From Paragordius varius (taxonomy: Eukaryota > Animalia > Nematomorpha): a DNA stretch of 64,000 nucleotides. The position numbers were made by a program, and so were the translations under genes. The notes beneath the pieces are model-generated. The model made no database searches. It saw only the letters and a list, made by a program, of their open reading frames with translations, and was not told the origin of the DNA. This document shows positions 1,174 through 41,287 of the stretch, piece after piece (the stretch's first letter is position 1; each line of letters starts with the position of its first letter). Location of the stretch: NCBI GenBank assembly GCA_964247055.1, contig OZ176060.1, positions 1,364,001 to 1,428,000 on the forward strand, written 5' to 3'.

Positions 1174-3589
1174 ACCTGAAATGTGTACCGATTAATTTTT
1201 TGAAAGCATGTTGGCCCGTGTAAAACAATGCACGAGGAAAAATAATGTAACTCATCAAAATAATTTTTTAAATAATATTCGTAAGCTTAACAGTTGGTTT
1301 TATATTACAATTGGTTGTCCCAGGTAACTTAAAAAATATATATTATTTACAAATTAAGAGCTAAGTTTTATGCTTTAAATAATAATAATAAACTATATAA
1401 TTTAGATAAAATTTATTTAGGATAAAACATTCGCAATCAAACTTGGTAGCCATTTTAATTTAAGAACTTTTGGAAAATCAGAAATACGAAACATATATAT
1501 GTAAATAATAACTTACTACAACACATTTTCAGTGTTTTAATTCAAATTGGGGTGGTTCGATACGCGCTTGTTAAAATTAAATATATTAATTAAATCATGG
1601 CATTATATTATTAATAAATCGTAATATGATTCAAAAATACTTGATATTATTTGCTGAGAAGTAAAAACCAAAGGTAAAAACTTAGACATGACATGTGCAA
1701 AAACTAAATATAATAATAATGCAAAATATACCTTTTTGTTTATATTAATGTTAAATGTGATTTTAATAAAATAATAAACTTAATTTTAAGCATAGAATCC
1801 AATAGACACGATATTTGGCAAACATGTTGTAAAAAAATGGCGTCCAAGTAGTTGATATGGTACTTTTTTTCCAAAACTGAATATTATTTAAATATTTTAT
1901 TTATATATAATAAAATAGAAGCATATATTGGAACCGTTTCTTTCAGCATCTTTTTAAAAATCAAATAATATTGCTTGAGGTATTTAGGTTCCATTTGAAT
2001 CGAAGTATTAAGCGAAGTAACGAAAAAAATCACTTCATTACATTTTTTTATGCGCGATAATATTTTAAGGTAATTATCTAGAAACTAGCAAAGACACTGC
2101 TATAAAAGCATTTTTGGTTAAAATGTGGTTATTAAAACTTCTTCTTCTGTATTAGATATAAACTAGAAATTTTTACAGCTATTTGACTTTTAGAGCCCCT
2201 AATTCAGATAGCGAAAACACGATTGAAAAAAATATCTGATTAAAGCATAAAATATCAAAAAGTTGGTAATAGGTGTAATTTAAAAGCTTTTCAAAGTTAA
2301 AATATATAACTATTAAATTCATTTACTGTATCCACACAAAAAGATCCGATGAAATAGACATTCTTATAAGAAATGTATCAGGATTACCAGAGTACTTTTG
2401 TGTTTGGGTTACAAGTGATTAAAGAAAGATTTTCACATTTTTATGGTAGGTGCTCTATATCAGAAAATGGTAGGATTTGCATACATTTTTTGAATTAAAA
2501 TTTTTTGGTAAAAGCTAAATATTTTATCCGAAAAATATGAAAATATATTATACAGCACATTTAAAAGAAACAACATTATCAAATTTTAATTTTAAGATGT
2601 GGGCTCAACTCTTTTTTCTTTTCAATGGGCTAGTCCTTTTATAAACGCAACTATGCCGGGATAACGTGAAAATAAATTAAGATAAAGGTTAAATTTTAAT
2701 ATCAACTAAAAATATTAAATTTTTAACATAATTTTGTTGTTGTACAACTATAATCATGTTGGAAACGGTTTTAAAACGCTTTAAGATATTATACAAACCC
2801 TTTTTCTATATTATTAGATGATGAACATGTCTATCATTTTAAAATCATATGTTAAAGGTTGATTTTACAAATATTTTTTGTGAATATTTGTAAATAAACA
2901 AATATATATAAATTTGAAAAGGACAATTACACTGTGACACAACATTTTCTGGATCCAAATTTATTATTATTTTCTGATTCCTTATGGTATTGTGATCAGA
3001 TTTTTGTAAAAAAATATTTACTTACCCAGGTCGGTTTCGAGATATGGGACTTTTTCTATATTTAGACATATACAATATTTTCTCGTTTGTAAATATTTTT
3101 CATTAGATCAACAAATAATATGTGGCTTATAATACAAATTTTATTATAGACCACCAATTTATCCTTAAAATAGAAAAAATAAACTCAAAATATTCAATAC
3201 TTTTTGTTTTAGGGGGCAAAAACCCTCAAAAACGGGGGAACTTAACATTTTTTGACACAAATATTTTTCATCTTATTAAATGAAAACACATTTTATTTTA
3301 TGTTCTTGGATGTTAGTAATGTTTGTTTATTTATAAATATCATTGTGTAATAGCTTTGTGGACTTTTATTTTAAAAAATAAATTTAATTTTTACATCTTT
3401 TTTGCTGTTTTTTTATCTAAAAAAGCTAAATTTTACTCAGCTGCATATAATATATTCTTTATTTCATATGATATTTTTAAATATTTCCTACACTTAAATA
3501 TACTCTATATCAGCATTTTCATCAAGAATATCTTAGTATATACCCAAAATGTACAAAAAATATAATTATCACCCACATTTTTTTAAAAA

Positions 3590-3960
3590 CGCCGCAGTTT
3601 TAATAGGGCCGCAGGTATTATACATTTAATTTTAGGTTACGAGTCTTTTGAACGATGTGGTGTTTAAATCTAAAATGCAACCCAAAGAAAAAGAGGCATA
3701 GGTTGCATTGCGAACTTTTACTTAAAAATTTTTGGGAAATTAAAAAATAACAATTACCTGGAATTAGTTAATCGACTTTTTCTATAGGATGGGTATGTAT
3801 GTTATAATCCTATGTTATTTAAACATTTATATTCTTTTTTATCCAAAAATATAGGATGCCGCATGAATCTAAAGCTACATATGGTGAATTCCCATTAGGT
3901 TTTTCCCAAAGACGCCATCACAAAAAGAGCCGAAAAGGGACATCAGTTTTAAATCTTTCG
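3590..3960 (+). pseudogene. Decayed, intron-containing C-terminal transposase remnant (mirror copy ~5404-5774, minus strand)
   Basis: Reads VLIGPQ|VTSLLNDVVF...EKEA*VALRTF...FLGN...|GCRMNLKLHMVNSHLGFFP...EKGHQ, matching the GPQIR.L..D / GC.MS.K.HFL.SHLDFFP / GERFHQ motif series. GT-AG introns at 3615-3635 (21 nt) and ~3793-3855; contains stops and frameshifts. Confidence 0.7.
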
Positions 3961-4144
3961 AAAAAACTTATCGAAATAATATAAATTTAATTTGCGATTA
4001 TATATATATATATATATATGTATATAATATATAAATTATAATTTTATTTTACTTTCATTCAAAATCAAGATAGATTATCCGTGTCTTTTTGACCAAAATA
4101 TACACTTTCTTTAATATTTACTCCAATTAATTGAAGCATTAAAT

Positions 4145-5160
4145 TACATGTTTTCACTCGTGAGAGCGGTCATGTTATATAACTTGTCTCGCCATAGTAC
4201 TCTATCTATGGCGTCTTCTGCATTAAGCTCGTATTCTGCTAACTCTTTTTACTGTATACCCATTTCGATTTAGGCCGCCCACGTCCTCGTTTTCCTTCAA
4301 CTATATGACTATCTATTATTTTTGCAATATGATTAGTCTCCTTTCAATGTGCCCCAACCAACGTACCCTATTTTTTGACATTCTTTTCACTATTGATTTA
4401 ATATCTGTGCTCCCACGAATAAATCTATTCTCAATTCTATACTCTGTTGTTACCCCACACATCATTCTAAGCATTTTCAGTTCAGTCACGTTGAAATGTC
4501 TTTCTTCGGATTTTTTGACACTCCATGTTGAGGGTTGAACAACTGAACTCTATATCTTACCTTTCACTCTAACATCAATATTTGGATCCCATAACACGCT
4601 TGAAATTTTTTTCCAATTTATCCAACTGCTCTTTATTTTTAAATTAATATCATCGGTCAACGATCCAACTGAACTTAACTTAGCCCCCAAATATTTGCAC
4701 CTTTCTTTACCCTTTACAACCCAACTATCATCAACTTCCATTTCATGTTGTGGACCCCCAAAAGTAATAAGTTCGGTTTTTGCTTTATTTACTTTAAGAC
4801 CTTATTGATTCAGTATAATGACCCATCTGTTTACCGTTCGCTTTAACTCAGCCAATGAATCAGAAAAGATGATTATGTCATCTGCATACATTACGTCAAA
4901 CCTGACCTTACATTAACGACCTTGGCTATCTCGTCCATACAAATTATAAACAATAAGGGGCTGAGTGATGACCTTCGTAGACTCCGTGCTTTATTGAAAA
5001 GGGCTATGACAAACCTTGTGGAGTTTTAATCCTGGAGGTGTGCAATTTGTACATTATTTGTAACAACGTGATATAACTTTCTGTCACCTTTTTACGACGG
5101 AGACTTCAACAAATAGTTTATCTAGGAATCCTGTCAGAAGACTTTTCTCTCTCAATTAAA
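4145..5160 (-). mobile_element. RTE-type LINE 3' fragment (RT domain and C-terminus), forming the spacer of the foldback
   Basis: MYADDIIIFSDSLAEL...GLKVNKAKTE (YADD motif), KYLGAKLSSVGSLTDDINLKIKSSWINWKKISSVLWDPNIDVRVKGKI and DAIDRVLWR tail; in-frame stops. Confidence 0.88.
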
Positions 5161-6489
5161 ACCCCGTGTAACTCTTTCAATGAGAATTATATATTAAATT
5201 ATACGCAAATCCTCATTTAATGCTTCAATTAATTAGAGTAAATATTAAAGAAAGTATATATTTTGGTCAAAAAGACACGGATCTATCTTGATTTTGAATG
5301 AAAGTAAAATAAAATAATAATTTATTTAGTATATATATATATAAATATATATATATAAATATATAATCGCAAATTAAATTTATATTATTTCGATAAGTTT
5401 TTTCGAAAGATTTAAAATTAATGTCCTTTTTCGGCTCTTTTTGTGATGGCGTCTTTGGGAAAAACCTAATGGGAATTCACCATATGTAGCTTTAGATTCA
5501 TGCGGCATCCTATATTTTTGGATAAAAAAGAATATAAATGTTTAAATAACATAGGATTATAACATACATACCCATCCTATAGAAAAAGTCGATTAACTAA
5601 TTCCAGGTAATTGTTATTTTTTAATTTCCCAAAAATTTTTAAGTAAAAGTTCGCAATGCAACCTATGCCTCTTTTTCTTTGGGTTGCATTTTAGATTTAA
5701 ACACCACATCGTTCAAAAGACTCGTAACCTAAAATTAAATGTATAATACCTGCGGCCCTATTAAAACTGCGGCGTTTTTAAAAAAATGTGGGTGATAATT
5801 ATATTTTTTGTACATTTTGGGTATATACTAAGATATTCTTGATGAAAATGCTGATATAGAGTATATTTAAGTGTAGGAAATATTTAAAAATATCATATGA
5901 AATAAAGAATATATTATATGCAGCTGAGTAAAATTTAGCTTTTTTAGATAAAAAAACAGCAAAAAAGATGTAAAAATTAAATTTATTTTTTAAAATAAAA
6001 GTCCACAAAGCTATTACACAATGATATTTATAAATAAACAAACATTACTAACATCCAAGAACATAAAATAAAATGTGTTTTCATTTAATAAGATGAAAAA
6101 TATTTGTGTCAAAAAATGTTAAGTTCCCCCGTTTTTGAGGGTTTTTGCCCCCTAAAACAAAAAGTATTGAATATTTTGAGTTTATTTTTTCTATTTTAAG
6201 GATAAATTGGTGGTCTATAATAAAATTTGTATTATAAGCCACATATTATTTGTTGATCTAATGAAAAATATTTATAAACGAGAAAATATTGTATATTGTA
6301 TATGTCTAAATATGGAAAAAGTCCCATATCTCGAAACCGACCTGGGTAAGTAAAAATTTTTTTTGCACAAATCTGATCACAATACCATAAGGAATCAGAA
6401 AATATTAATAAATTTGGATCCTGAAAATTGACCCTAAATTTTGTTGCACAGTGTTATCTTGAAAAATTCTGAGTGGTTGAAATGTTTAT

Positions 6490-10528: not shown

Positions 10529-11775
10529 GTGGGTAACAACGAGGGTTTGTAATGGAAATGATGTTAGAGTCGTCGTAAAATAACGCAAAAATAAAATATA
10601 ATCTATTAATTCTCGAATTTTCGCCATAGGCATCATCAGGAGATTAGTTAAGAAAAATATATCTAAAATAAGATAATAAAAATTAAATGAAAAAAAAATG
10701 AACAAAATCATGGTTGATATTACTTTTATAGGAAAAAATCACAAAAGAACCGTTAGTGGACAAAAGAAAGAAAGAAAGAAAGATCACAAAGAAACCGTTG
10801 TGATATAAAATAATCAAATGTGCATTTTCTATAAATAAAATAATAATTTAACATGAAACAATGTAAGCACAAAATTATTAAAATTTAAGTACACTGTAAA
10901 ATGGTTTGTGATTAAAAATTCGATAATTTTTGATAAACGATTCAGTTTCAGGGTTTTTATCTTTCCTTTCTTCACGGAGATTAAGTAAACCATCATCTGC
11001 GCTCTGTGTAAAGAGTGCTTCTTTTGTTATCCTTGAACTATACTCTCTTTCCACAGTTTAAACGTCAATTCTGTTTGAGCACTCATGGTTGTTATCCATG
11101 CAATGCAGAAACATGACTGAACTTTTGCTTTATTGATGTTCCTTATATCTTATTTTTAAGTTCCGCTTCGACTGGCCTATGTAAATTGCCGGGCAATTCT
11201 TGCATTTCAACTTGCATAACGTGTTTTCCATTTCCACTTCCTAGACTTTAACATTTTTAAAACGTTCGATGTTGGTTTATAAACCACTTTTATGGTATCT
11301 TTCTTTTTTGAAATTCTCCCGAGATTTTCTGATGTAGCGCTATAGGGTAAGCACGAAATTTTACACGATTGTTTTTTCCGGAGGGATGAATAGTTTCGTC
11401 TGTTGACTGTGAGGTTTCTGTGGGAAGGATGGGTAGGCATCAATCACAAACCATTTTACATAAATTTCAATAAGTTAAATTATTATTTTATTTATAGCAT
11501 TAATTTTTTTTATAAAAAATGCACATTTGGTTTATATATTTCACAACGCCTTCTTTGTGATCTTTCTTTCTTTTGTCCATTAACGGCTCTTTTGTAATTT
11601 TTTCCTATATATAAGTAATATCAACCATGATTGTTTTTTTTTTAATTTAATTTTTATTATCTTATTTTATATATATTTTTCTTAACTACTCTCCTGATGA
11701 TGCCTATGGCCAAAATTTGAGAATCAAGAAATTTTGATTTTTAAGTTATTTTACGACGATCCCAACATTATGTTA
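10529..11775 (-). mobile_element. 5'-truncated Penelope-like element with inverted pseudo-LTR (~10560-10850 / ~11473-11768)
   Basis: Flanked by 7-bp duplication TATTTGA (10522-10528, 11776-11782) that splits the hAT YYGL|FDST coding sequence. Internal minus-strand remnant LPYSATSENLGRI...IKVVYKP...CKNCPAIYIGQSKRNLKIRYKEH is a GIY-YIG endonuclease. Confidence 0.8.
11690..11730 (+). ncRNA. Degenerate minimal type I hammerhead-like motif in the PLE terminal repeat (mirror copy ~10605-10642, minus strand)
   Basis: CTGATGA-T-GCCTATGGC-(C)AAAA here; CTGATGA-T-GCCTATGGC-GAAA in the other copy; followed by short palindromic TT(T/C)GAGAAT and a UH triplet. Minimal hammerheads are known in PLE pseudo-LTRs. 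Confidence 0.5.
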
Positions 11776-13470: not shown

Positions 13471-14470
13471 GGGGTGCTAAATGATAATGAATTGGTGTAT
13501 ATGGATTTGATTAGTTTTATCAATGATTGGAAACTCCTATTTGTTAAAGGAGCTTGCAGAGAATGTCGTGTTAAACAGTCAAAGGCTTTACAAAAAATCA
13601 TGAAGCATAATGCAGCTCATAGAATTCAGTTTTTTTCCATAATACATATAAAACATAATGACAGTTGCAAAAATTTCTCCTTCCTAAAATAGATGCCCAA
13701 ACATTCATTAAAACCTAATTAATTCACATCATTAGTTTTTTGTTAAAAATTTTATATATCAATAAAAAATTATATCAAAATATGCACAACCCATATACAA
13801 TTTTACCAGTTCAATCATAAGATATGCAGAAGGGACATATTGAAGGATACAAATCAATGTTATTACAATAGCGTTAAAAGATTGTTAGTGCAAAATAGAA
13901 TAAAAACACTTTTTTAAAAAAAACATGGGGATATCATGATAGTGTATACAAAATTAGGGGACAATCTTGGTATATGTAAAATGTGCGCATTTGGTTCTTT
14001 AAATTGCGATAGAAAAATGAAAAAATAATAGTGAGACATAAAATCCCAGATTTCTGATAAAAAATATGGAATTTTCATTTCATGGTACTAATTAGGTAAA
14101 TAACAGAAGCCTATAGTTAACAATAGAGTATAATACGATAAAATAGAGATGTATGTTAATGTATGACTAAAAAATACTTAATTTTTTATAAATATATGCT
14201 AAGGTAAAAAATCAAATATTTGCGCAGTATTGGAAAAAAATTTTATAACTATTACAATACTATATTGTTACAAGTTTTAAATTTTTATTGAAAATTTGGT
14301 TTTCTATTTCATTTGGTAATAACTGGAGCCATATCATTATTTAAAATTGGTTATAAATAAAGATACGAAAATATATTAATTAATTATACATTATAATTGC
14401 TGATAGTTACATAATATTTTATAGATACAATATTTTTTATTAAATACAAACCATAACATTAAAATTAAAA

Positions 14471-14965
14471 TCTATATATTTATAAAAATGGAAAATAGGA
14501 AAAACGGTAGACCCAATCAAATCCAAACTTCAAAAAAATATAATCATTAATGAATGCCCCGACAATAGCTTCGCCCTTTTTTTGAAATAGGCCCCCAGTT
14601 CGGGCCCACCCCGTGTGAAAAACGGTTTTTTTTTGAAAACAGAAGTCCACAAAAATCGTGTCTTTGAGACAATTTTCTGGAGAACATGTTGGACCATTCA
14701 ATTTCAAATATAATTTTTGTTTACTTATTTTCGATTGCGCCGAACATAGTCGAGTCACTTTTTTGATTTAGGCCCTCTTTTTACCCCCTACCCCCGTAAA
14801 ATGCCATTTTTTTCAAAAAAAAACAAAGTCCACAAAAATATTTTTTTGATTGTATTTTTTTGCCCACGGTATGAGACTGTAAAAATTCAATTAAGATTCC
14901 ACGTATTCCCTGTTAAAAGGCAAAAATTTTAGTCAAGCGTTTCTTTGATAGATGCTGAGTAAGGA
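14471..14965 (+). mobile_element. Non-autonomous Helitron copy 1 (5' part, lacks own 3' end)
   Basis: A|TCTATATATTTATAAAAATGGAAAAT 5' end; colinear with copy at 53402. Confidence 0.8.
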
Positions 14966-15027
14966 GTATCTATCAGATGTATAGCATGTTAAAAGATATA
15001 TGGATATTAATACATTATTTATGGTAA

Positions 15028-15171
15028 TCTATATATTTATAAAAATGGAAAATGCTGGCTTTGTGATATGGTACCGGAAAACCGGTAGACCTAATAAAAT
15101 CCAAACTTCGAACCCCCCCAGAAGTCCGAAGGACTTCCTCGGGCTGCGTAGCAGCACGAGATTTACGCTAG
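15028..15171 (+). mobile_element. Non-autonomous Helitron copy 2 (144-bp minimal element)
   Basis: A|TC start, hairpin CTCGGGCTGCGTAGCAGCACGAG, ends CTAG|T, no TSD. Confidence 0.85.
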
Positions 15172-17130
15172 TATATTTATATAACTTAAATATTTTTTTA
15201 GTCATACATTAACATACATCTCTATTTTATCGTATTATACTCTATTGTTAACTATAGGCTTCTGTTATTTACCTAATTAGTACCATGAAATGAAAATTCC
15301 ATATTTTTTATCAGAAATCTGGGATTTTATGTCTCACTATTATTTTTTCATTTTTCTATCGTAATTTAAAGAACCAAATGCGCACATTTTACATATACCA
15401 AGATTGTCCCCTAATTTTGTATACACTATCATAATATCTTTTTATTCTATTTTGCACAACAATCTCTTACTCCATACGCTACTCTATTTCTCTCATAAAA
15501 TAAATGTACCTAAAAGGAACATAATAATATATATGCTCATTTAATCAATGTGATACCACCGATGCAACTTTTAAACAAAACAAAAATCATCCATATTTAA
15601 AAAATACATAGTATTATATAAATATTTACTATATAATCAATCTAATGATTTATTTTTTTTAAGTTAAATTTATTAACTGGTTGAGTATATCATTCAGTCT
15701 TATAAGCATTTTTCCAATCGTTCGAATCAATTATTCAATCATTTACTAATTAAAAATCGGTTTCTTTTTAATGATTATCAAAACAAGATATAAAAATAAC
15801 CTTCTATGAGATTATCAATGCGATATAATATAAAAACACTATTATTATAATAATTTCTTCTATTTTATCCAATACACATATAGTTATTAACTGGAAATTT
15901 ATGGCTATGATATTTTATAAAAAAAATTTTTAAGATTTTTTTTAGATTTTTATATTAACAATTGAAATTCATTCATTAATATTTGGCTAATTTGGGATGC
16001 ATAATTTTAAAAATATATCGTATTCTTATCTATTTGGTCATTTTACACTTCATACTAATTAATTATATCAAGTTTATCGATAAAAAAGGTGGGATAATTT
16101 TAAACAAAAAAATATTTTTCAGATGAAAATGTCAAAAATATATTTGACCAAATGATAAATACACTATATAAATTATGGTGCGCAAGTTTAGTTTAAAAGC
16201 TAATTCGAAATGTAAATCCAATTGGAATGGTATTTTTGATTTTATAATATTAAGCAAAACTATAGATAACTCCAAATATTAATGCCAACCATTGACCTCA
16301 ATTATAAAAAATATAAATATTTTGATATAATATCACTAAGAAATATATATCCACTTAATAAAATATTTTTAAAGAATAAGTCATTATTGGCATATAATTA
16401 AAAAAAATAGTCATTCCATAATTGGGTTCTATAAAATAATATCCAATTGATAAACGCATAGTATAAAATTATTTATGTATCTTGATTTGATATTCATCAT
16501 CAAAAATAAAACCGTTTTTATTAAGTTTTGATTGACAGGGAATTTCGCGTAATCCCCGCATTTCGCGTTCATTTAAAAAATAAAGCAAATCTTGCAATTT
16601 TTTGATATGAATCACTTACCACCGTGCAAATATTCTTAAAATACTCGTAACGGCCAGAACCCAAAAGCACCATGATAATCATGATACATTTTCTATCAGA
16701 ATAAATTTCATCAGTACATTGTTTGTGTGTAATAGTTTAAAGATATTAGGTGAAAAATAAATGTGACAATGGATAAATAAAATCATTAAATTATGGGCGA
16801 AATCAAAATGTTTGAGGACAAATTTTTCATAAAACAAAATATAGTTTTCAACTTAGAAAAATCATTTATATCACAGAGGATTCAGGCAAAAATTAATTAT
16901 TAATTGATCATTGATACTAAAATCAGATATTAAAACAGAAAAAATCCAATCATTTTGCTGTTTTCCGCATTCTACTTTAATCTAACGTTTACATTAAATC
17001 TAATAAAATAATATATTTAAATAATAGATGTTGTTTTTTTATAATTATTATTTGTTAGGCTATTATAAAAATTTATGGTAGAAAAAATATACAGTAAAAT
17101 ATGTAATTATCCGTACGAATTTTTTAACTA

Positions 17131-17300
17131 ACGGACATAATTTTTTTATAAGAGACAGAGTGTTAAAATCAAAAGATTATAATTTTTAATTGGCGGACAA
17201 ATTTTTTTTTATACGGACAAATTTTTTTTTAACGGACAAATTTTTTTTTATACGGACAAATTTTCGATTATACGGACAAATTTTTTTTTATACGGACATA
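17131..17300 (+). repeat. Subterminal array of ~20-bp ACGGACAAATTTTTTTTTAT units (mirror 25269-25438)
   Basis: ACGGACA/GCGGACA core at ~17131, 17193, 17213, 17232, 17252, 17272, 17292. Confidence 0.9.
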
Positions 17301-18914
17301 AATCCGAAATATAATAGGGTAAGAGGAGCTCTTATCTATAACACTAGACAACATTTCTGCCACTCGAGTTTTTTGCATTTTTTGATATTTAGTATCTTTT
17401 TAACAGTCTAAAATAAAAATTATAACTCCTTCTAAGAATTTTTAATTTTTTAATAGTTTTGATTATGCGCCCTCTTTATCAAAATTTTACTAAAAAATGT
17501 TTTTATATGAAAATATACAAGTAATGCCCATTTGTAATATAAAAAAGTAATAAAAACTTAAAATGTATACTAAAATGTATTACATCGACAGTTATTATTG
17601 GACACAGATAGCTACAAACGCGCGAAGCGACATTTTTTTAATTAATATATCTTTATAACTAATGGATGAAAATAGCTCAAACTTTGTTTAGTTGGTGATG
17701 AATTTCCAAAAAAGATAACACAAGAAAGTTTTTTTGTGTGAAATATTTTATTTATTCTTTTATGTCACTCAAAACAGCCATTTTGTTTTTTAAAAATTAC
17801 CATCTCATCAATAATAATTTAGGCTGATTATTTCGAAATTTTAAAGATTAAACCAACGTTTAAGGTAATATTTATCTTTTCTAGCCATTATGTAATAATA
17901 GAGTAACTATGCATTTTAGTATCCACTAGGTAAAATATTTATGATAAAAATAATAAGCAAACCAAAAGCTTTTTCAAACATTTTTTTAAATTAAATACTA
18001 ATATGACCCTAATAATTATATTATAATAATTTATATGATTTTTAGATTAGTTTGTCTGTGAAAATTCTAGACTTATTTAAGGATTGGAAATTTCGACCAT
18101 TTAAATCCAAATAACTTTTATATCCGATTGATATAAATAAATTACCATTATTAAGATGCAGTGTTTTGCGCTCTTTCGAATGATATAAAATACATGGCTT
18201 CATATCTAAAACTTTTAATTTTCGAAATTTCGAGTTTAATGTTAAATTGGAGCTAAAAATTATCGATAAACTTAATATTAAAAAAATCTTGAATGCTAGA
18301 CCAATTCTCTTTTCAGATATACTAATTATGTACATTTACAAGAATGGCAGTTAAATAAAGTTAAATTTTGTTTTCTAGTGTAATATTGATAAATAATAAC
18401 TCTTTGAATTCTAGTCGGCTAAATGTTTACTTTGTATTTTATAAGAGGCTTTAAAATTATAACATAGCATTTGATATTCACCGAATTAAGAATAAACCAT
18501 TTTTGATTTAATATTATTTATTTATTATTAAATGAATAGGATTTATAAAATCTCACATTTAACTAAGGCAAAATATTATTTCATTTGCATTATTAACACC
18601 AATCATACTGTCATCTATTTGTAAAATATAAAAAAAACCTTATCATAACTATATTCATTTCAAAGAAACTTTTTCACTACTGAAAAATAATAATAATCCA
18701 ATTTTTCATTTTATTAATCTTATTTTAACAATGTTTCCAATCTTATAATAAGGTTTAATCGAAAACAATAGTATAATGGGCTACTACACTGTCTGTATTT
18801 TTAGATTATGTATCATATCAACTCTCTTTATTATATTGTTAAATGGGACACCTTTCAATTAACGACAAGATGGGACTCTTCTTAATATTAAAACATCTAC
18901 CGTATAAGCTCAAT

Positions 18915-18945
18915 AAGCAGACGATTAAATATTAATCGTCTGCTT
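18915..18945. repeat. Perfect 14-bp stem / 3-nt loop hairpin (mirror 23624-23654)
   Basis: AAGCAGACGATTAA-ATA-TTAATCGTCTGCTT. Confidence 0.85.
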
Positions 18946-18965
18946 TTGGTATCAAATATAACTGC

Positions 18966-19276
18966 AATATGATGTAATAGAGTCAATAATTTATTAAAAT
19001 AATATTTATATGAAAATAACATCAATATAAATAAATAGTAAAAAAATAAATAATGGTGAAAAAAATAAAAACACTAATAAATGCCTTAAAAAATTTTTAT
19101 GTCAGAAAACAGTTACTGATTAACCATATGGATCGCAATAAATTAGAACGGGAACAAGTTTTACAGTTTTTGCACAGTAATGAAGAGATTTCCAACTATT
19201 AAATATATGCCTGCGGTTGAAATATAAAATATTTGAAGATGATTTATGAAATAATATTTTAATCATCCCATACATT
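18966..19276 (+). pseudogene. Decayed partial copy of the element's own transposase, tail-to-tail with the intact gene
   Basis: By-eye alignment to CDS ~22418-22848: AATATGATG, AAATGCCTTAAAAAA, CGCAATAAATTAGAA, perfect 22-mer AAGTTTTACAGTTTTTGCACAG, AAATATAAAATATTTG, CCCATACA; the segment encoding YIDETG is deleted. Confidence 0.75.
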
Positions 19277-19321
19277 ATAAATAATGTCTATACACCGTAT
19301 TATCTAAATAATAAAATGATA

Positions 19322-20263
19322 TTAGCTATGAAAAAATAGATCCAATTTAAATGATTCACAACAAAAATCATATGAATTTTCAGGTAATAAATTTAATTTT
19401 TTTAAACAAACATTATTTAGTATTTTATCTACATGTTCATAATATTTACTTAAATCCTTATTATAAAATATTTTAGAAACTTCTTTTATATTTTTATCCA
19501 TATTTAAATCTTTCTTATTAAGAGCTCGTAATTTGTGTTTAAATTCATGGAAAATACACTCAATAGGATTTAATTGAGGTGAATATGGTGGTAAAAAAAT
19601 TAAGTTTTCGAATTCTTTATTTCGAGAATAACGATGAATAGGGGCATTATCCAAAATTATATAGGATGTTGAAGGTATTATTTTAAAACATTCCTGTAAA
19701 AAATGATATATATCATCCCCATTGTATGGGTCAGATTTATATTCATATTTTATCATTCCATTTATTCCAATCATAGCCAAATAGTTTATATTTTTACCTC
19801 TTGGCTTACGTTTAATCGTAGGAAATTCTCCCTTTTTACACCAACAATATAAATAAAGACTGTAATCATTGATTCCAGTCTCATCTATATAATATATGTC
19901 GCTGTGCAAAAACTGTAAAACTTCCCACGCATAAGTATACCTATGCTCTATTATTTCTATTTTATTGCGATTTATAGGCTCAATCTGAGCCTGTTTTCTT
20001 ACAAAAGAATTTTTTTTTAAGCATTTATATAATGTAGTTTTTGATATTTTTAATGAATAGGGAATAGAATCTAAAATTTCATCAATTGTGATATTATTAT
20101 TTTCATTTAAAATATTTTCTATGGCTTCCTTTAATTTACAATCATCATATTTTGGCTTGCGGCCACTTTTTTTAGGTGGGATGTGAAGGCCGACGTTCAA
20201 TCGCCTGCGATATTTATAAATTGTTGATCTGGACATTTTTAAAATGTTCATATTGTCCGTCAT
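19322..20263 (-). CDS. IS630/Tc1/mariner DDE transposase, intact, 313 aa (left arm)
   Basis: HTH-like SRSTIYKY and SKTTLYK, GRKPK linker, YIDETG (D127), ILDNAPIH (D205), LPPYSPQLNPIE (E235). Confidence 0.95.
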   Translation of the reverse strand: MTDNMNILKMSRSTIYKYRRRLNVGLHIPPKKSGRKPKYDDCKLKEAIENILNENNNITIDEILDSIPYSLKISKTTLYKCLKKNSFVRKQAQIEPINRNKIEIIEHRYTYAWEVLQFLHSDIYYIDETGINDYSLYLYCWCKKGEFPTIKRKPRGKNINYLAMIGINGMIKYEYKSDPYNGDDIYHFLQECFKIIPSTSYIILDNAPIHRYSRNKEFENLIFLPPYSPQLNPIECIFHEFKHKLRALNKKDLNMDKNIKEVSKIFYNKDLSKYYEHVDKILNNVCLKKLNLLPENSYDFCCESFKLDLFFHS

Positions 20264-20655
20264 AGTATTATTCGAAGTGGACGGATTACTGAAAAGGCTC
20301 TTAGCAATTTCATTCTTTTCATTTGTCCAACTTCCTCTGCCTTAACCAAATATTCACAAAGAATTTATTATTTTAGATAGTTGAATAAACAATTCTTATA
20401 TTTAACAGGTAATTAATTATATTATTTTATTAAATTTTTTAAATAAAAGTTATTGATTCAATCGGAATAATGTAACTAGAATACCTTTAATAAAATAAGG
20501 TGGAAGAATCAATTTACTTATGTAACTATATTAAAATTTGCAAGATTTTCATAATATGTTAAATATAATATCTAAACTATTCCCATTCGAAAAATTATTT
20601 TAAATAACGTCGATCTCAAACCTTGATATAAGTTTTAAATATATATGCAAAAATA

Positions 20656-20909
20656 TTAAAGGAAATTATGTCGCATAAAAACACAAAAAGATACTAGAGC
20701 TAGCACAATGGTATTATGGAATATAATATAATTTGAAATGTATATACGTTTTCTTTGACGAATCGTATCATCTCGGTTGTTTTCTGAACATATAGATGTA
20801 GATGGCGATGACGGTGAGAATGATGGTGAGCGTATAATTGAACGCTTTTCTGTACAATCATCATAGAAATCTAAAGGTGAAATTAAATTTTACCATAGGT
20901 GTGATCCAT
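20656..20909 (-). CDS. Candidate 76-aa spliced micro-gene (left-arm copy)
   Basis: Mirror of 21660-21913. Confidence 0.45.
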
Positions 20910-21659
20910 TAATAATAGGCCGAATAAAGAGTATTAAATATAGATATTGTTAAAGTATATTAAAAGTGATTAAATTAAGATGAAAAGACTATGGGTACAC
21001 GTAAAAAAATAATAATTAGTTAATAAAATATTATAAATTAAAATTGATTAAATATAAGATGAAAAGATTATGGGTACAAAAAAGAACAAAATAATTAATT
21101 AATAAAAGTAAAAAAATTCGAAATTTGATATGTGTACTAGGTTTTTTTGACAGGGGGGTTCATTAAAATGAACTCATATTTGGTACCTAATTCCATTTTT
21201 ATATTTGACTTATGATACTACACTAGTTTATAATATAAAATAAATTTGGCCGTATTAAAATATTTAATTATGGTTGTAAGATATAAAAATATGTAAATTT
21301 AACTATATGATGTTTTAATCAATACGCAACTATCACCAAACGGGAGCAAAAAATAAAGTAAATTGACTACCAATAATATGCATACGTTAAATATATGTAT
21401 AAATCTGTTGCTCGCCTGTCAAAAAAACCTAGTACACATATCAAATTTCGAATTTTTTTACTTTTATTAATTAATTATTTTGTTCTTTTTTGTACCCATA
21501 ATCTTTTCATCTTATATTTAATCAATTTTAATTTATAATATTTTATTAACTAATTATTATTTTTTTACGTGTACCCATAGTCTTTTCATCTTAATTTAAT
21601 CACTTTTAATATACTTTAACAATATCTATATTTAATACTCTTTATTCGGCCTATTATTA

Positions 21660-21913
21660 ATGGATCACACCTATGGTAAAATTTAATTTCACCTTTAGAT
21701 TTCTATGATGATTGTACAGAAAAGCGTTCAATTATACGCTCACCATCATTCTCACCGTCATCGCCATCTACATCTATATGTTCAGAAAACAACCGAGATG
21801 ATACGATTCGTCAAAGAAAACGTATATACATTTCAAATTATATTATATTCCATAATACCATTGTGCTAGCTCTAGTATCTTTTTGTGTTTTTATGCGACA
21901 TAATTTCCTTTAA
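21660..21913 (+). CDS. Candidate 76-aa spliced micro-gene upstream of the transposase (exons 21660-21675, 21699-21913)
   Basis: ATG GAT CAC ACC TAT G|GTAAAATTTAATTTCACCTTTAG|AT; the 23-nt intron matches host intron size. Product MDHTYDFYDDCTEKRSIIRSPSFSPSSPSTSICSENNRDDTIRQRKRIYISNYIIFHNTIVLALVSFCVFMRHNFL; locally raised GC. Confidence 0.45.
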
Positions 21914-22305
21914 TATTTTTGCATATATATTTAAAACTTATATCAAGGTTTGAGATCGACGTTATTTAAAATAATTTTTCGAATGGGAATAGTTTAGATA
22001 TTATATTTAACATATTATGAAAATCTTGCAAATTTTAATATAGTTACATAAGTAAATTGATTCTTCCACCTTATTTTATTAAAGGTATTCTAGTTACATT
22101 ATTCCGATTGAATCAATAACTTTTATTTAAAAAATTTAATAAAATAATATAATTAATTACCTGTTAAATATAAGAATTGTTTATTCAACTATCTAAAATA
22201 ATAAATTCTTTGTGAATATTTGGTTAAGGCAGAGGAAGTTGGACAAATGAAAAGAATGAAATTGCTAAGAGCCTTTTCAGTAATCCGTCCACTTCGAATA
22301 ATACT

Positions 22306-23247
22306 ATGACGGACAATATGAACATTTTAAAAATGTCCAGATCAACAATTTATAAATATCGCAGGCGATTGAACGTCGGCCTTCACATCCCACCTAAAAA
22401 AAGTGGCCGCAAGCCAAAATATGATGATTGTAAATTAAAGGAAGCCATAGAAAATATTTTAAATGAAAATAATAATATCACAATTGATGAAATTTTAGAT
22501 TCTATTCCCTATTCATTAAAAATATCAAAAACTACATTATATAAATGCTTAAAAAAAAATTCTTTTGTAAGAAAACAGGCTCAGATTGAGCCTATAAATC
22601 GCAATAAAATAGAAATAATAGAGCATAGGTATACTTATGCGTGGGAAGTTTTACAGTTTTTGCACAGCGACATATATTATATAGATGAGACTGGAATCAA
22701 TGATTACAGTCTTTATTTATATTGTTGGTGTAAAAAGGGAGAATTTCCTACGATTAAACGTAAGCCAAGAGGTAAAAATATAAACTATTTGGCTATGATT
22801 GGAATAAATGGAATGATAAAATATGAATATAAATCTGACCCATACAATGGGGATGATATATATCATTTTTTACAGGAATGTTTTAAAATAATACCTTCAA
22901 CATCCTATATAATTTTGGATAATGCCCCTATTCATCGTTATTCTCGAAATAAAGAATTCGAAAACTTAATTTTTTTACCACCATATTCACCTCAATTAAA
23001 TCCTATTGAGTGTATTTTCCATGAATTTAAACACAAATTACGAGCTCTTAATAAGAAAGATTTAAATATGGATAAAAATATAAAAGAAGTTTCTAAAATA
23101 TTTTATAATAAGGATTTAAGTAAATATTATGAACATGTAGATAAAATACTAAATAATGTTTGTTTAAAAAAATTAAATTTATTACCTGAAAATTCATATG
23201 ATTTTTGTTGTGAATCATTTAAATTGGATCTATTTTTTCATAGCTAA
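22306..23247 (+). CDS. IS630/Tc1/mariner DDE transposase, intact, 313 aa (right arm, identical to left)
   Basis: Same translation and motifs as 19322-20263; D127-D205-E235 triad. Confidence 0.95.
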   Translation: MTDNMNILKMSRSTIYKYRRRLNVGLHIPPKKSGRKPKYDDCKLKEAIENILNENNNITIDEILDSIPYSLKISKTTLYKCLKKNSFVRKQAQIEPINRNKIEIIEHRYTYAWEVLQFLHSDIYYIDETGINDYSLYLYCWCKKGEFPTIKRKPRGKNINYLAMIGINGMIKYEYKSDPYNGDDIYHFLQECFKIIPSTSYIILDNAPIHRYSRNKEFENLIFLPPYSPQLNPIECIFHEFKHKLRALNKKDLNMDKNIKEVSKIFYNKDLSKYYEHVDKILNNVCLKKLNLLPENSYDFCCESFKLDLFFHS

Positions 23248-23292
23248 TATCATTTTATTATTTAGATAATACGGTGTATAGACATTATTTAT

Positions 23293-23603
23293 AATGTATG
23301 GGATGATTAAAATATTATTTCATAAATCATCTTCAAATATTTTATATTTCAACCGCAGGCATATATTTAATAGTTGGAAATCTCTTCATTACTGTGCAAA
23401 AACTGTAAAACTTGTTCCCGTTCTAATTTATTGCGATCCATATGGTTAATCAGTAACTGTTTTCTGACATAAAAATTTTTTAAGGCATTTATTAGTGTTT
23501 TTATTTTTTTCACCATTATTTATTTTTTTACTATTTATTTATATTGATGTTATTTTCATATAAATATTATTTTAATAAATTATTGACTCTATTACATCAT
23601 ATT
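23293..23603 (-). pseudogene. Decayed antisense partial transposase copy (right arm)
   Basis: Mirror of 18966-19276; the perfect 22-nt complement of 22646-22667 lies at 23392-23413. Confidence 0.75.
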
Positions 23604-26056
23604 GCAGTTATATTTGATACCAAAAGCAGACGATTAATATTTAATCGTCTGCTTATTGAGCTTATACGGTAGATGTTTTAATATTAAGAAGAGTCCCATC
23701 TTGTCGTTAATTGAAAGGTGTCCCATTTAACAATATAATAAAGAGAGTTGATATGATACATAATCTAAAAATACAGACAGTGTAGTAGCCCATTATACTA
23801 TTGTTTTCGATTAAACCTTATTATAAGATTGGAAACATTGTTAAAATAAGATTAATAAAATGAAAAATTGGATTATTATTATTTTTCAGTAGTGAAAAAG
23901 TTTCTTTGAAATGAATATAGTTATGATAAGGTTTTTTTTATATTTTACAAATAGATGACAGTATGATTGGTGTTAATAATGCAAATGAAATAATATTTTG
24001 CCTTAGTTAAATGTGAGATTTTATAAATCCTATTCATTTAATAATAAATAAATAATATTAAATCAAAAATGGTTTATTCTTAATTCGGTGAATATCAAAT
24101 GCTATGTTATAATTTTAAAGCCTCTTATAAAATACAAAGTAAACATTTAGCCGACTAGAATTCAAAGAGTTATTATTTATCAATATTACACTAGAAAACA
24201 AAATTTAACTTTATTTAACTGCCATTCTTGTAAATGTACATAATTAGTATATCTGAAAAGAGAATTGGTCTAGCATTCAAGATTTTTTTAATATTAAGTT
24301 TATCGATAATTTTTAGCTCCAATTTAACATTAAACTCGAAATTTCGAAAATTAAAAGTTTTAGATATGAAGCCATGTATTTTATATCATTCGAAAGAGCG
24401 CAAAACACTGCATCTTAATAATGGTAATTTATTTATATCAATCGGATATAAAAGTTATTTGGATTTAAATGGTCGAAATTTCCAATCCTTAAATAAGTCT
24501 AGAATTTTCACAGACAAACTAATCTAAAAATCATATAAATTATTATAATATAATTATTAGGGTCATATTAGTATTTAATTTAAAAAAATGTTTGAAAAAG
24601 CTTTTGGTTTGCTTATTATTTTTATCATAAATATTTTACCTAGTGGATACTAAAATGCATAGTTACTCTATTATTACATAATGGCTAGAAAAGATAAATA
24701 TTACCTTAAACGTTGGTTTAATCTTTAAAATTTCGAAATAATCAGCCTAAATTATTATTGATGAGATGGTAATTTTTAAAAAACAAAATGGCTGTTTTGA
24801 GTGACATAAAAGAATAAATAAAATATTTCACACAAAAAAACTTTCTTGTGTTATCTTTTTTGGAAATTCATCACCAACTAAACAAAGTTTGAGCTATTTT
24901 CATCCATTAGTTATAAAGATATATTAATTAAAAAAATGTCGCTTCGCGCGTTTGTAGCTATCTGTGTCCAATAATAACTGTCGATGTAATACATTTTAGT
25001 ATACATTTTAAGTTTTTATTACTTTTTTATATTACAAATGGGCATTACTTGTATATTTTCATATAAAAACATTTTTTAGTAAAATTTTGATAAAGAGGGC
25101 GCATAATCAAAACTATTAAAAAATTAAAAATTCTTAGAAGGAGTTATAATTTTTATTTTAGACTGTTAAAAAGATACTAAATATCAAAAAATGCAAAAAA
25201 CTCGAGTGGCAGAAATGTTGTCTAGTGTTATAGATAAGAGCTCCTCTTACCCTATTATATTTCGGATTTATGTCCGTATAAAAAAAAATTTGTCCGTATA
25301 ATCGAAAATTTGTCCGTATAAAAAAAAATTTGTCCGTTAAAAAAAAATTTGTCCGTATAAAAAAAAATTTGTCCGCCAATTAAAAATTATAATCTTTTGA
25401 TTTTAACACTCTGTCTCTTATAAAAAAATTATGTCCGTTAGTTAAAAAATTCGTACGGATAATTACATATTTTACTGTATAACGTTTTTCAGTCAAAAGC
25501 AACATTTCAGCCAAATGCAACATTTTTCCAACCAAACGCAACAATATTTTTTGCAAGCAAACACAATATTTCAGCAAAAAACTCAAAAAATGATGACTTT
25601 GGATATAAAAATGCGTTTGCTAATGTTGTCTTAAAAAAAGTCGCTTTTGATTTTTTTTAAATTGGATAAATAAAACGCTTGATTACAAAAATGTTGAGTA
25701 ATTCGCTTAGGGTTTTTGTACTAAAAATTAATAAATCTACACATTTCTCATTTTATATCAGTAGAAAAATTAAAAGTGAAACTACTATTACAAACGTAAC
25801 CTTAAAAAAATTATACTGTTTTCAAATTAAACCCCATTAAAAATATCACCTGCTCCTGGTGTTAGCAATCCTATAATAAAATAGGTTAACAGGGTGGCGG
25901 GCTTAAAGAACCTGAGTGTGCAAAAATGATACGAGCGTGTCTGTGGTTTGGATATACTTGTAAAAAATGCCTCCACTTCTATATAAAAAGTTTTTAAAAT
26001 TAATACTAAACTGATTCTAAAATAATTCTTTGTTGTTTGTTCTATTATATTGAAAT

Positions 26057-29000: not shown

Positions 29001-32000
29001 ATCATTCTGTGGTTAATTTTTATCTTTTGTAATATTAATCTCTCTCGTTGTATATAATATGTTTGTTTAAATCATGCTTAGTTTGGAAGAAGAAAATTAC
29101 ATTTCCGATACTAGATCCTTTTTATATAGGTAATTTTATTATGCTTTTCTCAAACAAACTCTAATTTGTATTCTACTCTCCAAATTTTAACAACAAAAGG
29201 ACTCTCTCAAATTGTAAATATGAAGTAGTGTTGTATTTTGCAATCACGTTAGGACTTAATTTATCTGAAGCCCATCCGTTTTAATTGTTTTGGCATGGTC
29301 GGCGGATTTGTTGGGTTAAGAATAACGGCCAATAAGATATTTATGAATAAAAACTCTTTACAGCTAACAAAACCCTTACGTCCTCCAAATCTATTTATCC
29401 ATCAACTACTGAAAATGTGCGTTCTATAATCATTTAAAAAATTTTCTATCCACCTGTTTTTTATACAATTAAAAAGAACTTCTGCCAGCTGAAGAATCTA
29501 CATATTTCTACACTTTATAAGCTATTATCCATTTTGTGAAAAAGGCTGTGTTTTGTTAATACTATCGTTTCAATTATTGTAAGCATTCCCATCAGGCAAT
29601 AATTCTAACCTTTACTGTTTCATATTATGATGATGATTAAATCCTTACATGTTTGCTATTCAAAGATAGTTTATCACTTTCGTCCGAATCTTGGGCTACA
29701 CTTATTATTAACAAATAGAATCTTTATCAGGTACTTGACTTGCATCTTAAATCTGATAACTGGGGACGACAAAGCAAAATCAATGGTAAATTTATTATAT
29801 ATATCGTATTGTATACTATATATATATATATATATATCTAAGATAATTAGGTCTAATGTATTCACATATATCAAGGTAAGATGTTTGCTTTTATACAACT
29901 AACTCAAGGTATAATAATAATAGTCACAGGTGGTGGTGATGTTATAATAATAATATAATAATACTACACACATAATTTAAGAGGTTAATATAATAATATA
30001 TAACGAATGTTGTTTGTGCGGTTAATCTAATAGTGTAATAAAAGATTTATTCAAATTAGCCTGTCAGTTACTACTCTAACATCACTACCCCCTCCTAACG
30101 AAAGCGGGCAGGTTTCTGACGACTTCTTGTCGGGTACCGTCGTTCTTGTGTTTTAGCGAGGAACTGGTTGTCGCAGATTCCTGGGTATCATTATTTGGAC
30201 TTTCGGCTGTCGGAGTAATTGGTTCGATTTCGTCCCTTGCATTGATCGTGTTTGGTTGCGTTTCCGCGATTGTTCCATCATCCGTGGCAATGGTTACCTC
30301 CTCCTCATTTGTGTTGCTGGAAGTGGTCAGCTGTGGTTGTTGTACTATTTGGTCAGCGTGTTTCCTCACAACTTGTCTCGGTCCTTGTCCCACACCTTCT
30401 ATGAAAGCAGCCCTGTACGGTCCGTAATCTCTCCAGCGCGCTACCTTGGACCTAATTCATTTTTACTCATTACCTGGTCAGTAATGGCATCGGGGGGCCG
30501 GTGCATCTAGCAATTTCGCCCTACTGTTTAACCAGGTTAAGGGGGTATGGGGAGTACGCTTGAACATTAACTGGGCCGGGGTTTCTTTCGTTGTTGAGTG
30601 TATAGAATTTCTATACGCCCATAAGCTAATGTTAAACGCTTCGCGGGTGGATATCACATTATTTTTTATTCTTTTGTTGTTTTTTATTGTACCTACTAAC
30701 CTTTCTACCATCCCATTACTCTTAGGATGGTAAGGGGTAACCTTAATATGTTTCACCCCTAACGTACTTAAGGTTGACGTAAAATACTCATTACTGAAAT
30801 ACGAAACGTTATCGCTAACGATCTCTCTTGCAAAGCCAAACTTTGCAAAGGTTTCTTCTATTTTGTGGATAATATTCGCTGCGGTTACCTTTTTCAAAAT
30901 AAATTTTTCTGCCCATTTCGAGGCACTATCAATTATCAACAACCAATAAAAACCATCTACCGGTCCGGCGATATCAATATGCAAACGTTCCCATACAGCA
31001 ACATTATGATCTTACTGATACGTGGAATTCTGAGTAACATTCGGCCTACTACGTTGGCACGATTCGCAATGACTACTACTGGCTTTTACCAGGTCATTTT
31101 CTAATTTTGGCCAATAACACGTAAATCTGGCCATCGCTTTCATGGTCTCTACGTTGTTATGACCGCTGTTAGGTATCTCACCACCTCTTTTTGGAGGGGC
31201 TTCGGAATTACAATCCGATCATTTAAACTTTATAAACCATATAGATATGCCAACTCGTCCTTACGGTTTACAAACTTTTCTAATTCTGGAGAACTCCAGT
31301 CATGGTTGTTTAACGCTTTAATTACTTTTTGTAACACTGGATCTAATGCGGTTTCTTTTCGAATTTCATCTCTGCTTAACCGCACGTTATGACAATTCAA
31401 AAATCTCAAACATCTAACCGCATAATCTACATCATAGGCAACGATCTCGTCAATCGGCCATCTCGATAAATAATCAGCTCTATTTTGAGCCTCTTTTTGT
31501 GACTTATTTCAAAGTCGTATTCATTTATCATATTAATCCACCTTATTTTGATCTCTATTTATTAACAATACTAAAGGTAATTATAAATTTTCTACCATAT
31601 AGGAAACTATGAAACTTACGTAACGTAAATAATATTGCTTTTAATTCCTTTCAGCGTTGCTACATTTTTGTGAGGCATACGCTATCGGTATCCTTTCACT
31701 ATTAACTTCATGACTTAAAATACACCCGAAACCTATATCTGACGCATGAGTTTCTATTATCAATTTCCTATTCGGATTAGGGGTAATGATAACTGGGGAC
31801 GACAAAGTAAAGTCAATGGTAAATTTATTATATATATCGTATTGTATAATGATCTATCTATGTATATATATATATATATATATATAAGATAATTAGGCCT
31901 AATGTATTCACATATATCAAGGTGAGATGTTTGCTTTTATACAATTAACTCAAGGTATAATAATAATAGTCACACGTGGTTATAATAATATAATAATACT

Positions 32001-39487: not shown

Positions 39488-39601
39488 TGAGCAAAATTCA
39501 ATTATTTCACATTTAGGTGTTTTTTATGAAAAAAAAATTATATATTTCTCTGATAAGATATGTACCGAAAAGGAATCATATTGCAATGTTATTTTATTAT
39601 A

Positions 39602-41287
39602 CAGTAGCGTATGCAGTAAAATATTGTTAGTGCGCAATAATCTAAAAACACAAAACAGGGGGATATTATGGATAGTGTATACAAAATCAGGGGACAATCT
39701 TGGTATATGTAAAAATGCGCATTTGGTTTTCGTAAAATTGCGATGAAAAATTGTAAAAATATTAGTGAAACAGAATTTCCCAGATTTCTTATAAAAAAAT
39801 GTTAATTTTTCATTTCATGTAGAACATTCCTGAATTGAATTATGGAACTGTATACAAATACTATTAGAAATTATACAAGATCTTTATTTAAATTAATACT
39901 TGCTTTTCTCGATCTATTTAAAACTGAATAAGCGTGAGGTTAAAAATTAAAATATTTTTAAAATTTAGGGTTTTTTGTTAAAAATAATTACATAAGTTTA
40001 CTTGTTAAATGCATTGCTTATATTATTTATTAACCTCTTATTAACTGCTAAACTTTTAGATTTCTTAATTTTTTGTAGTTTTCACAACATCTAATCTTCT
40101 AGTAACGTTATCTAAAATGAATATATCTGTAATACATTTCTAGAAGTATCAATTTGTTGAATATTTGGTATTGTGGCTTCATTTTCCTCTGAGTATTCAT
40201 AAACATTTAATAAATTTTAAATAAAAAACATCATAAATATTTCTCACAAAAATTTTATGTACAGTAGCGTATGCAGTAAAAGATTGTTAGTGCAAAATAA
40301 TCTAAAACAGGGGGATATTATGGATATGTTTATAAATAAGACTGAATGATAATCAAATATGAAAATTGAGGACATTTGGTCGACACATTTGGTATTGAAA
40401 ATCTAATACATAAAATTTTTATGAGAAATATTTATGATGTCATTTATTGAAAATTTATTAAATGCTTATGAATACTCAGAGGAAAATGAAGCCACAATAC
40501 CAAATATTCAACAAACTTCTAGAAATGTATTACAGGATATATCCAATTTAGATAATTACTAGAAGATTAGATAATATTATTTAACATGTTCATTAAAATT
40601 ATTGTTCATATATACTTATTTCTCAGTGTTAATAAATAGATATTTATTATTATATAATATATGGTTTTTATTGTTGCACATTTAAGAAAACATAATTGTT
40701 AAATATATCCTTGTGTTTAAAATCTTGTGAATCTGTGAAAAAGACAAGGTGTCGGTTAATAAAAAATAATATAAATTTAACAATTAAACTTATGTAATAA
40801 TCCTTTAATTTTTCACCTCACGCTTAGTTTTAAATAGGTCGAGAAAAGCAAGTAATAATAATTTAAATAAAGATCTTGTATAATTTCTAATTGTATTTGT
40901 ATACAGTTTCATAATTCAAATCACGAATGTTCAAAACTAAGAATAAATCTGGGAAATAATGATTCACTAATATTTTTACAATTTTTCATCATAATTTTAC
41001 AAAAACCAAATGCGCATTTTTACATATACCAATATTGTCCCCTGATTTTGTATACACTATCCATAATATCCCCCTGTTTGTGTTTTTAAGATTATTGCGC
41101 ACTAACAATCTTTTACTGCATACGCTACTGTATTAGCTTTTCAATACCAAATGTGCCGACCAAATGTCCTCAATTTTCATATTTTGATTATCATTCAGTC
41201 TTATTTGTAAACATATCCATAATATCCCCCTGTTTTGTGCTTTTTAGAATATTTTGAACTAACAATCTTTTACTGCATGCGCTACTG
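39602..41287. mobile_element. CAGTAGCGTATG-family element with a second copy (40262-41130) inserted in opposite orientation
   Basis: Four TA-flanked CAGT/ACTG termini (39602, 40262, 41130, 41287); interleaved inverted repeats a-b-a'-b'. Confidence 0.8.

Follow-up and report, generated by a model that had tools for sequence, protein, structure and literature searches.

A palindromic Tc1/IS630-type transposon of Paragordius varius with a transposase open reading frame in each inverted arm

How does a transposon come to consist almost entirely of its own mirror image, with a transposase gene in each half? This question is raised by a locus of the nematomorph Paragordius varius, where an 8.4-kb palindromic element lies within a window of 64,000 nucleotides, corresponding to positions 1,364,001 to 1,428,000 of contig OZ176060.1 in the assembly GCA_964247055.1 (all coordinates below are counted from the first nucleotide of this window). 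An original prediction, made from the letters of the sequence, had described it as a giant Tc1/IS630 transposon whose 4-kb inverted repeats each contain an intact transposase. The analysis reported here showed that the palindromic element is real and constitutes one unit with TA and CAGT at its ends. It is probably a recently inserted Tc1-type element in which the extension of the inverted repeats is near completion, and whose palindrome was mobilised to the TA where it is now found.

Architecture and boundaries of the palindrome

Repeat search and direct string comparison revealed an inverted pair at 17088-21154 and 21415-25481, composed of two arms of 4,067 nt that are 100% reverse-complementary and lie 260 nt apart. 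Measured from CAGT, each arm comprises 4,063 nt, the left one at 17092-21154 (+) and the right one, its exact mirror, at 21415-25477 (-), and the unique central spacer of 260 nt occupies 21155-21414. The two identical 4,063-bp arms around a 260-bp unique spacer that had been predicted were in this way verified over every base, and any position of the left arm can be converted to its counterpart in the right arm as 42569 minus the coordinate. The four outermost bases of each arm in the longer count are TATA, comprising the TA that abuts the terminus and a second TA in the flank. The putative target-site duplication (TSD) corresponds to the TA at 17090-17091 on the left, preceded by another TA, and to the TA at 25478-25479 on the right, within a target context of ATATATA; TA adjoins both termini, and this AT-rich context makes a chance TA likely. 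Immediately beyond TATA, the two flanks were unlike each other in the string comparison, so that the CAGT/ACTG termini, the adjoining TA and the unrelated flanks all stand as first described.

The left end (17092-17310, +) presents the CAGT terminus followed by 5-6 direct subterminal repeats of ~20 bp with the core ACGGACAAATTTTTTTT, and the right end (25259-25477, -) presents the same subterminal repeats and the ACTG terminus. These repeats are putative transposase binding sites, resembling those of Tc1 elements with long inverted repeats. In a motif search of the window, the 28-nt terminus was found at the two outer ends only, with 0 occurrences expected by chance, and a subterminal 17-mer gave 11 matches versus 0.15 expected, five at each end and a degenerate one within the spacer. 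This degenerate unit was the sole trace of an end in the interior, since the inner ends of the arms carried neither a terminus nor a block of repeats, and BLAST of an arm against the window recovered no second terminus within the element. The absence of inner termini means that the element cannot be regarded as two complete elements joined into a composite. A composite of the Tn5/Tn10 type, or a double element, in which each unit needs both ends, was consequently rejected, and the earlier statement to this effect is upheld by both the terminus search and BLAST.

An identical open reading frame (ORF) of 313 codons is located in each arm, at 19322-20263 (-) on the left and at 22306-23247 (+) on the right, and both genes are transcribed outward from the centre, i.e., they are divergent, as had been proposed. 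This arrangement could in principle derive from two separate copies of the family that came into a head-to-head position when one was inserted within or beside the other, and whose inner ends were subsequently deleted, leaving a decayed composite like the double-Ds of maize. Insertions of Tc1 elements into one another do occur, and this family has deletion derivatives. However, the inner ends of the arms are exactly mirror-image, a symmetry that independent deletions would not have generated, and no inner terminus is left. Moreover, the arms are 100% identical over 4,067 nt (differences at 0 of 4,067 sites), whereas contigs of the family differ from one another by 1-10%. An origin from two copies is regarded as highly improbable.

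The evidence from reads consisted of Logan contigs only, all of them short, from the runs X1, X3, X4 and X5. In X1, a 454-nt contig (16664-17117) connects the left flank to the terminus and shows 0 differences, and in X3, which bears another organism label, a 203-nt contig (21078-21280) crosses the border between the left arm and the spacer, also with 0 differences. The border between the spacer and the right arm is crossed by contigs of X5 (21193-21445) and X4 (21235-21445), with ~2% differences. Both of these contigs stop exactly 31 nt into the right arm, where a graph built with k=31 has to break if the spacer is bordered by inverted copies of one sequence. Thus, among the junctions singled out in the original prediction for verification, both spacer/arm borders were recovered in contigs of independent runs, and, as for the flanks, the left one with its terminus was recovered in the X1 contig only.

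These contigs bear on the suspicion that the palindrome was created during library preparation or assembly, through the incorporation into the contig of a fold-back chimeric long read or a chimera of multiple displacement amplification. A chimeric read would indeed make two 4-kb arms perfectly identical, and no spanning read is available to contradict it. Nevertheless, the symmetry stops exactly at the termini plus TA and gives way to two different flanks, which a fold-back read does not yield, and it is interrupted by a unique centre of 260 nt. In addition, the junctions are carried by contigs of four runs, from at least three samples, and similar but older elements with long inverted repeats are common in the window. 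The end of the symmetry at transposon termini, the two different flanks and the junction contigs therefore make a fold-back artefact very unlikely.

The transposase gene and the internal parts of the arms

The product of the 313-codon ORF matched the Pfam domain DDE_3 (PF13358) with E = 1.9e-22 and 80 bits, against a cut-off of 28.6, and the same domain was found in 229 homologues. Alignment of this protein with nine relatives placed the catalytic residues D127 (IDETG), D205 (LDNAPIH) and E235 (LNPIE) in invariant columns. The domain match and the conserved D, D and E sustain the predicted Tc1/IS630 assignment, and together with the CAGT/ACTG Tc1-like termini and the 5-6 subterminal repeats of 20 bp per end, which are features of the superfamily, they place the element in the IS630/Tc1/mariner superfamily, with a DDE transposase of the IS630/Tc1 type. 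Membership in the DD34E/Tc1 family proper was rejected, since it requires 34 residues between the second D and the E, and the spacing between D205 and E235 is 29 residues (DD29E), which corresponds to a 5-residue gap relative to most homologues. As for the bipartite helix-turn-helix that forms the N-terminal DNA-binding domain in the superfamily, Pfam returned weak matches (HTH_17, 5e-6; HTH_7, 1.6e-3), and its first helix would lie upstream of the ATG. In a search of 5.8 billion proteins, the closest homologues were only ~33% identical, and the closest named relatives, at ~30% identity, came from Hydra, the myxozoan Thelohanellus, microsporidia, mucoralean fungi and a lobster. No other Tc1-type coding relics were detected in the window by tblastn with 120 homologues.

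The variation within the family was informative for this gene. Seven family variants were listed in the ORF, as the best-supported sites of a longer list, and all seven fell at third codon positions, six of them being synonymous and one resulting in I126M; the chance of such a distribution is ~(1/3)^7. This third-position pattern points to selection on the coding sequence of the family.

Besides the transposase gene, each arm harbors several other components. A nested repeat of ~1 kb and very high copy number was delimited by BLAST at 17345-18335 (approximate), with its mirror at 24234-25224, and a solo copy with 75% identity was found by BLAST within the window at 45230-46127. In the short-read contigs, the summed depth of this repeat was ~2,000-3,000x that of the single-copy flank, and loose ends and joints were observed at its borders, so that a few percent of the genome may consist of it. 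No obvious terminal inverted repeats (TIRs) were found at its borders, and its ORFs gave no Pfam match. Since the nested repeat is identical in both arms, it was present before the arms were duplicated.

Just past the stop codon of the transposase gene lies a decayed, inverted fragment of the transposase (codons ~70-165) at 19059-19244 (+), with its mirror at 23325-23510. It is 74-76% identical, in inverted orientation, to 19769-20051 in blastn, and shows 46% identity to amino acids 77-122 in tblastn. This fragment is left over from an earlier duplication in inverted orientation, and because of it the 3′ region of the transposase gene could pair with the coding region.

Upstream of the transposase gene, each arm continues for ~0.9 kb. 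Near the inner end of the arm, the repeat search identified two tandem units of ~79 bp, 80% alike, at 20976-21118 (mirror at 21451-21593); subrepeats fill only ~200 of the 4,063 nt of each arm. In the same upstream segment, reading by eye alone suggested a candidate small spliced ORF at 20656-20909 (-), with its mirror at 21660-21913 (+), which consists of an ATG, a 23-nt GT..AG segment and then an open frame with a hydrophobic tail at its end. Among animals, ultra-short introns have been reported only for myxobolid myxozoans and Dicyema (PMC13644364).

Copies of the family and origin of the palindrome

The abundance of the family was estimated from contig depths, which add up every contig of at least 90% similarity and are to be read as orders of magnitude only. 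The ratio of arm depth to spacer depth is uninterpretable, given that family contigs were summed and those fitting both arms may be split. In X1, contigs of the single-copy flank had a depth of ~240-340 and the bins of the spacer summed to 3,000-4,400, equivalent to about 10-15 copies per genome, the corresponding sums being 14,000-38,000 for the outer arm and for the 3′ half of the gene. In X5, the junction contig had a depth of 240 versus ~40-46 for single-copy sequence, i.e., ~5x, which indicates that this variant of the palindromic centre is present several times. Altogether, the family and the spacer are multi-copy, and the palindromic centre probably is as well. A joint connecting 19788 to 20794 through four filler bases reached a depth of 4,040 in X1 and 330 in X5, and represents a multi-copy internal-deletion derivative from which the 5′ half of the transposase gene is missing. 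The occurrence of this derivative in two runs is as expected of an active cut-and-paste family.

According to the reading that we favour, the left ~4.06 kb of an ancestral asymmetric element would have been copied in inverted orientation around the 260-bp centre, replacing the original right part. The copied left part would already have contained the terminus, the subterminal repeats, the nested repeat, the old gene fragment and the transposase gene together with its ~0.9 kb of upstream sequence. This duplication may have arisen during replication or gap repair, through template switching or fold-back priming, or, alternatively, by a conversion that started in the shared terminal repeat and ran inward, and both routes fit what the TIRs of the Drosophila transposon Galileo show. 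With identical and correct Tc1-type outer ends, the 8.4-kb palindrome could then be cut by the family transposase and pasted at a TA, and the present copy would be such an insertion into the ATATATA context. In other words, the palindrome would have moved as a unit, and the identity of its arms would reflect either a very young event or conversion between them.

Other elements with long inverted repeats in the window, whose arm identity is graded (99%, 97% and 93%), count in favour of this reading. They comprise a 3.2-kb element at 3068-6296, with 959-nt arms that are 99% identical around 1,311 nt and ends that begin ATATACAAT, in which tblastn with the same 120 homologues found no Tc1-type coding relic; an element at 13930-15438, with 267-nt arms that are 97% identical; and a 1.5-kb non-coding element at 39599-41133, with TA-CAGT ends and 192-nt arms that are 93% identical, which belongs to a second Tc1-type family and is probably non-autonomous. 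To these can be added an element at 10593-11740, with 106-nt arms that are 90% identical.

Several observations weigh against the mobilised palindrome. In relation to the locus itself, no read or contig covers the whole element, whose far ends are linked by the assembly alone; X1 may be the assembly's own sample; and the junction contigs of the other runs that are ~2% off this copy represent other copies or strains, and not necessarily this locus. In relation to its history, the ancestral asymmetric element was not recovered, and no empty site was seen; BLAST of the joined flanks against the window gave no uninterrupted paralogue. In relation to the gene, similarity to relatives extends 26 codons upstream of the first ATG (to 20341), covering the first DNA-binding helix, and neither ATG nor GTG nor TTG lies in this extension before an in-frame stop closes it. 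An exhaustive search through all combinations of an ATG with a single GT-AG intron of 15-129 nt gave 0 solutions that would rescue a start codon, and none of the RNA runs listed contained words of the ORF, so that any autonomy of the element is putative. The description of the transposase as intact is thus supported for the open 313-codon frame with D, D and E only, and the gene, although open, is possibly truncated at its N-terminus. As for other copies, no contig record encoding exactly this transposase was found in a search with the protein, and the 26-nt terminus had 0 matches in metagenome contigs.

A different history would dispense with the movement of the palindrome. In this alternative, an ordinary asymmetric element was inserted at the locus and a copy of its left side subsequently replaced the right one, through conversion or break-induced synthesis that started from the shared terminal repeat, proceeded 4 kb inward and halted at the spacer, and the palindrome itself never transposed. 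Such a formation in place would keep the TA and both flanks without requiring the transposition of 8.4 kb. It is weakly hinted at by the spacer, whose relic-like subterminal repeat stands in the orientation of a right end, a weak match (21/24) that was reached by 1/300 shuffles. A second weak hint comes from one X1 contig, ~8% diverged, which departs from the palindrome 10 nt after the spacer and could derive from the asymmetric ancestor. On the other hand, variants of the spacer/arm junction occur at several times the single-copy depth in other runs, suggesting that more than one palindromic locus exists. Formation in place is considered unlikely in comparison with the mobilised palindrome.

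The same junction variants allow a further step to be contemplated beyond the favoured reading, namely that the palindrome is a propagating design and not a one-off accident, its arms being kept identical by arm-to-arm conversion. This idea arises because variants of the junction that differ by ~2% are multi-copy and yet the arms of this copy show no difference over their whole length; it is put forward tentatively, as a possibility that we find somewhat doubtful. If it were true, the element would contain its own repair template and two copies of the gene, in the manner of the palindromes of Y chromosomes and the inverted repeats of plastids, and the many Tc1 elements with long inverted repeats would reflect a lineage-specific repair bias toward fold-back copying.

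Neighbourhood, known counterparts and meaning of the element

The neighbourhood of the palindrome is rich in transposable elements (TEs). In addition to those described above, a retroelement integrase core was identified on the (-) strand at 30481-30984 (Pfam rve, E = 6e-7), 5 kb beyond the right end of the palindrome. The palindrome lies ~700 bp upstream of ORF pieces that match a galactose-binding domain like that of the F5/8 type C family, which belong to a lectin gene. The first ~65 nt of the right flank (25478-25545) contain repeats of a CAAA(T/C)GCAACATTTTT-like motif. These first 65 nt also match 57876-57941 with 76% identity, in a match that starts at the border of the element and has no counterpart on the left side. 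As the matching segment lies upstream of a second lectin region, it may be an upstream element shared by paralogous lectin genes.

Among the known systems, foldback elements, such as FB of Drosophila and the long-TIR elements of the Tc4/Tc5 type of Caenorhabditis elegans, resemble the palindrome in that they consist nearly entirely of inverted repeat and carry short tandem repeats near their ends. The arms of FB are mostly composed of tandem subrepeats, with little coding sequence, whereas the arms described here are complex, unique sequence that includes a gene. Membership among the FB elements was rejected because of the small share of subrepeats in each arm given above, although the architecture resembles theirs. 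Composite transposons, such as Tn5 and Tn10, are similar in having two inverted units that bear transposase, of which the outermost ends are used. In the engineered 'sandwich' vector of Sleeping Beauty, two transposase-type units are likewise inverted and moved by the outermost ends, each of them being complete with both ends, which distinguishes these two complete elements from the palindrome, where the inner ends are absent.

The closest precedent for the extension of the repeats is found in Galileo, a member of the P superfamily in Drosophila, whose TIRs recruit internal sequence, nested TEs and from 69 to >500 bp of the transposase ORF (PMC4168063). As in the element of P. varius, the long TIRs of Galileo grow by taking in non-TIR sequence, their ends are conserved and many structural variants are found (PMC4168063). 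Galileo differs in its superfamily, in its TSDs of 7-8 bp, in the recruitment of only part of the ORF and in having no functional copies known, whereas in P. varius the whole ORF plus ~0.9 kb of upstream sequence is contained in each arm and just 260 bp remain unique. Hence, of a TIR that includes the whole transposase gene, for which the original prediction knew no counterpart, the partial form is already published for Galileo (PMC4168063), so that a claim of uniqueness could at most concern the inclusion of the whole ORF.

A second precedent is Mu killer of maize, an inverted duplication of terminal repeat and transposase sequence that can fold into a ~4-kb hairpin (PMC3440606). Mu killer is a partial and immobile copy that needs read-through from a flanking gene, and its silencing activity has been demonstrated; the palindrome, by contrast, has a complete end on either side and genes directed away from its centre. 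A silencing role like that of Mu killer would require a read-through hairpin transcript.

The element thus represents TIR extension carried to an extreme within a Tc1-type family, and not a new kind of element. If confirmed, it would represent the limiting case of this process, in which 97% of a Tc1-type element is inverted repeat and two complete transposase genes face outward. Such a case has a practical consequence for the annotation of this genome, in which palindromic Tc1 elements are located beside and within genes, as standard TE pipelines would score one palindromic Tc1 element as two elements. It would also offer a natural system in which to study the tolerance and mobilisation of long perfect palindromes, a possible protection of a transposase gene from decay by conversion between the arms, and a possible function of such copies in silencing their own family through hairpin RNA.

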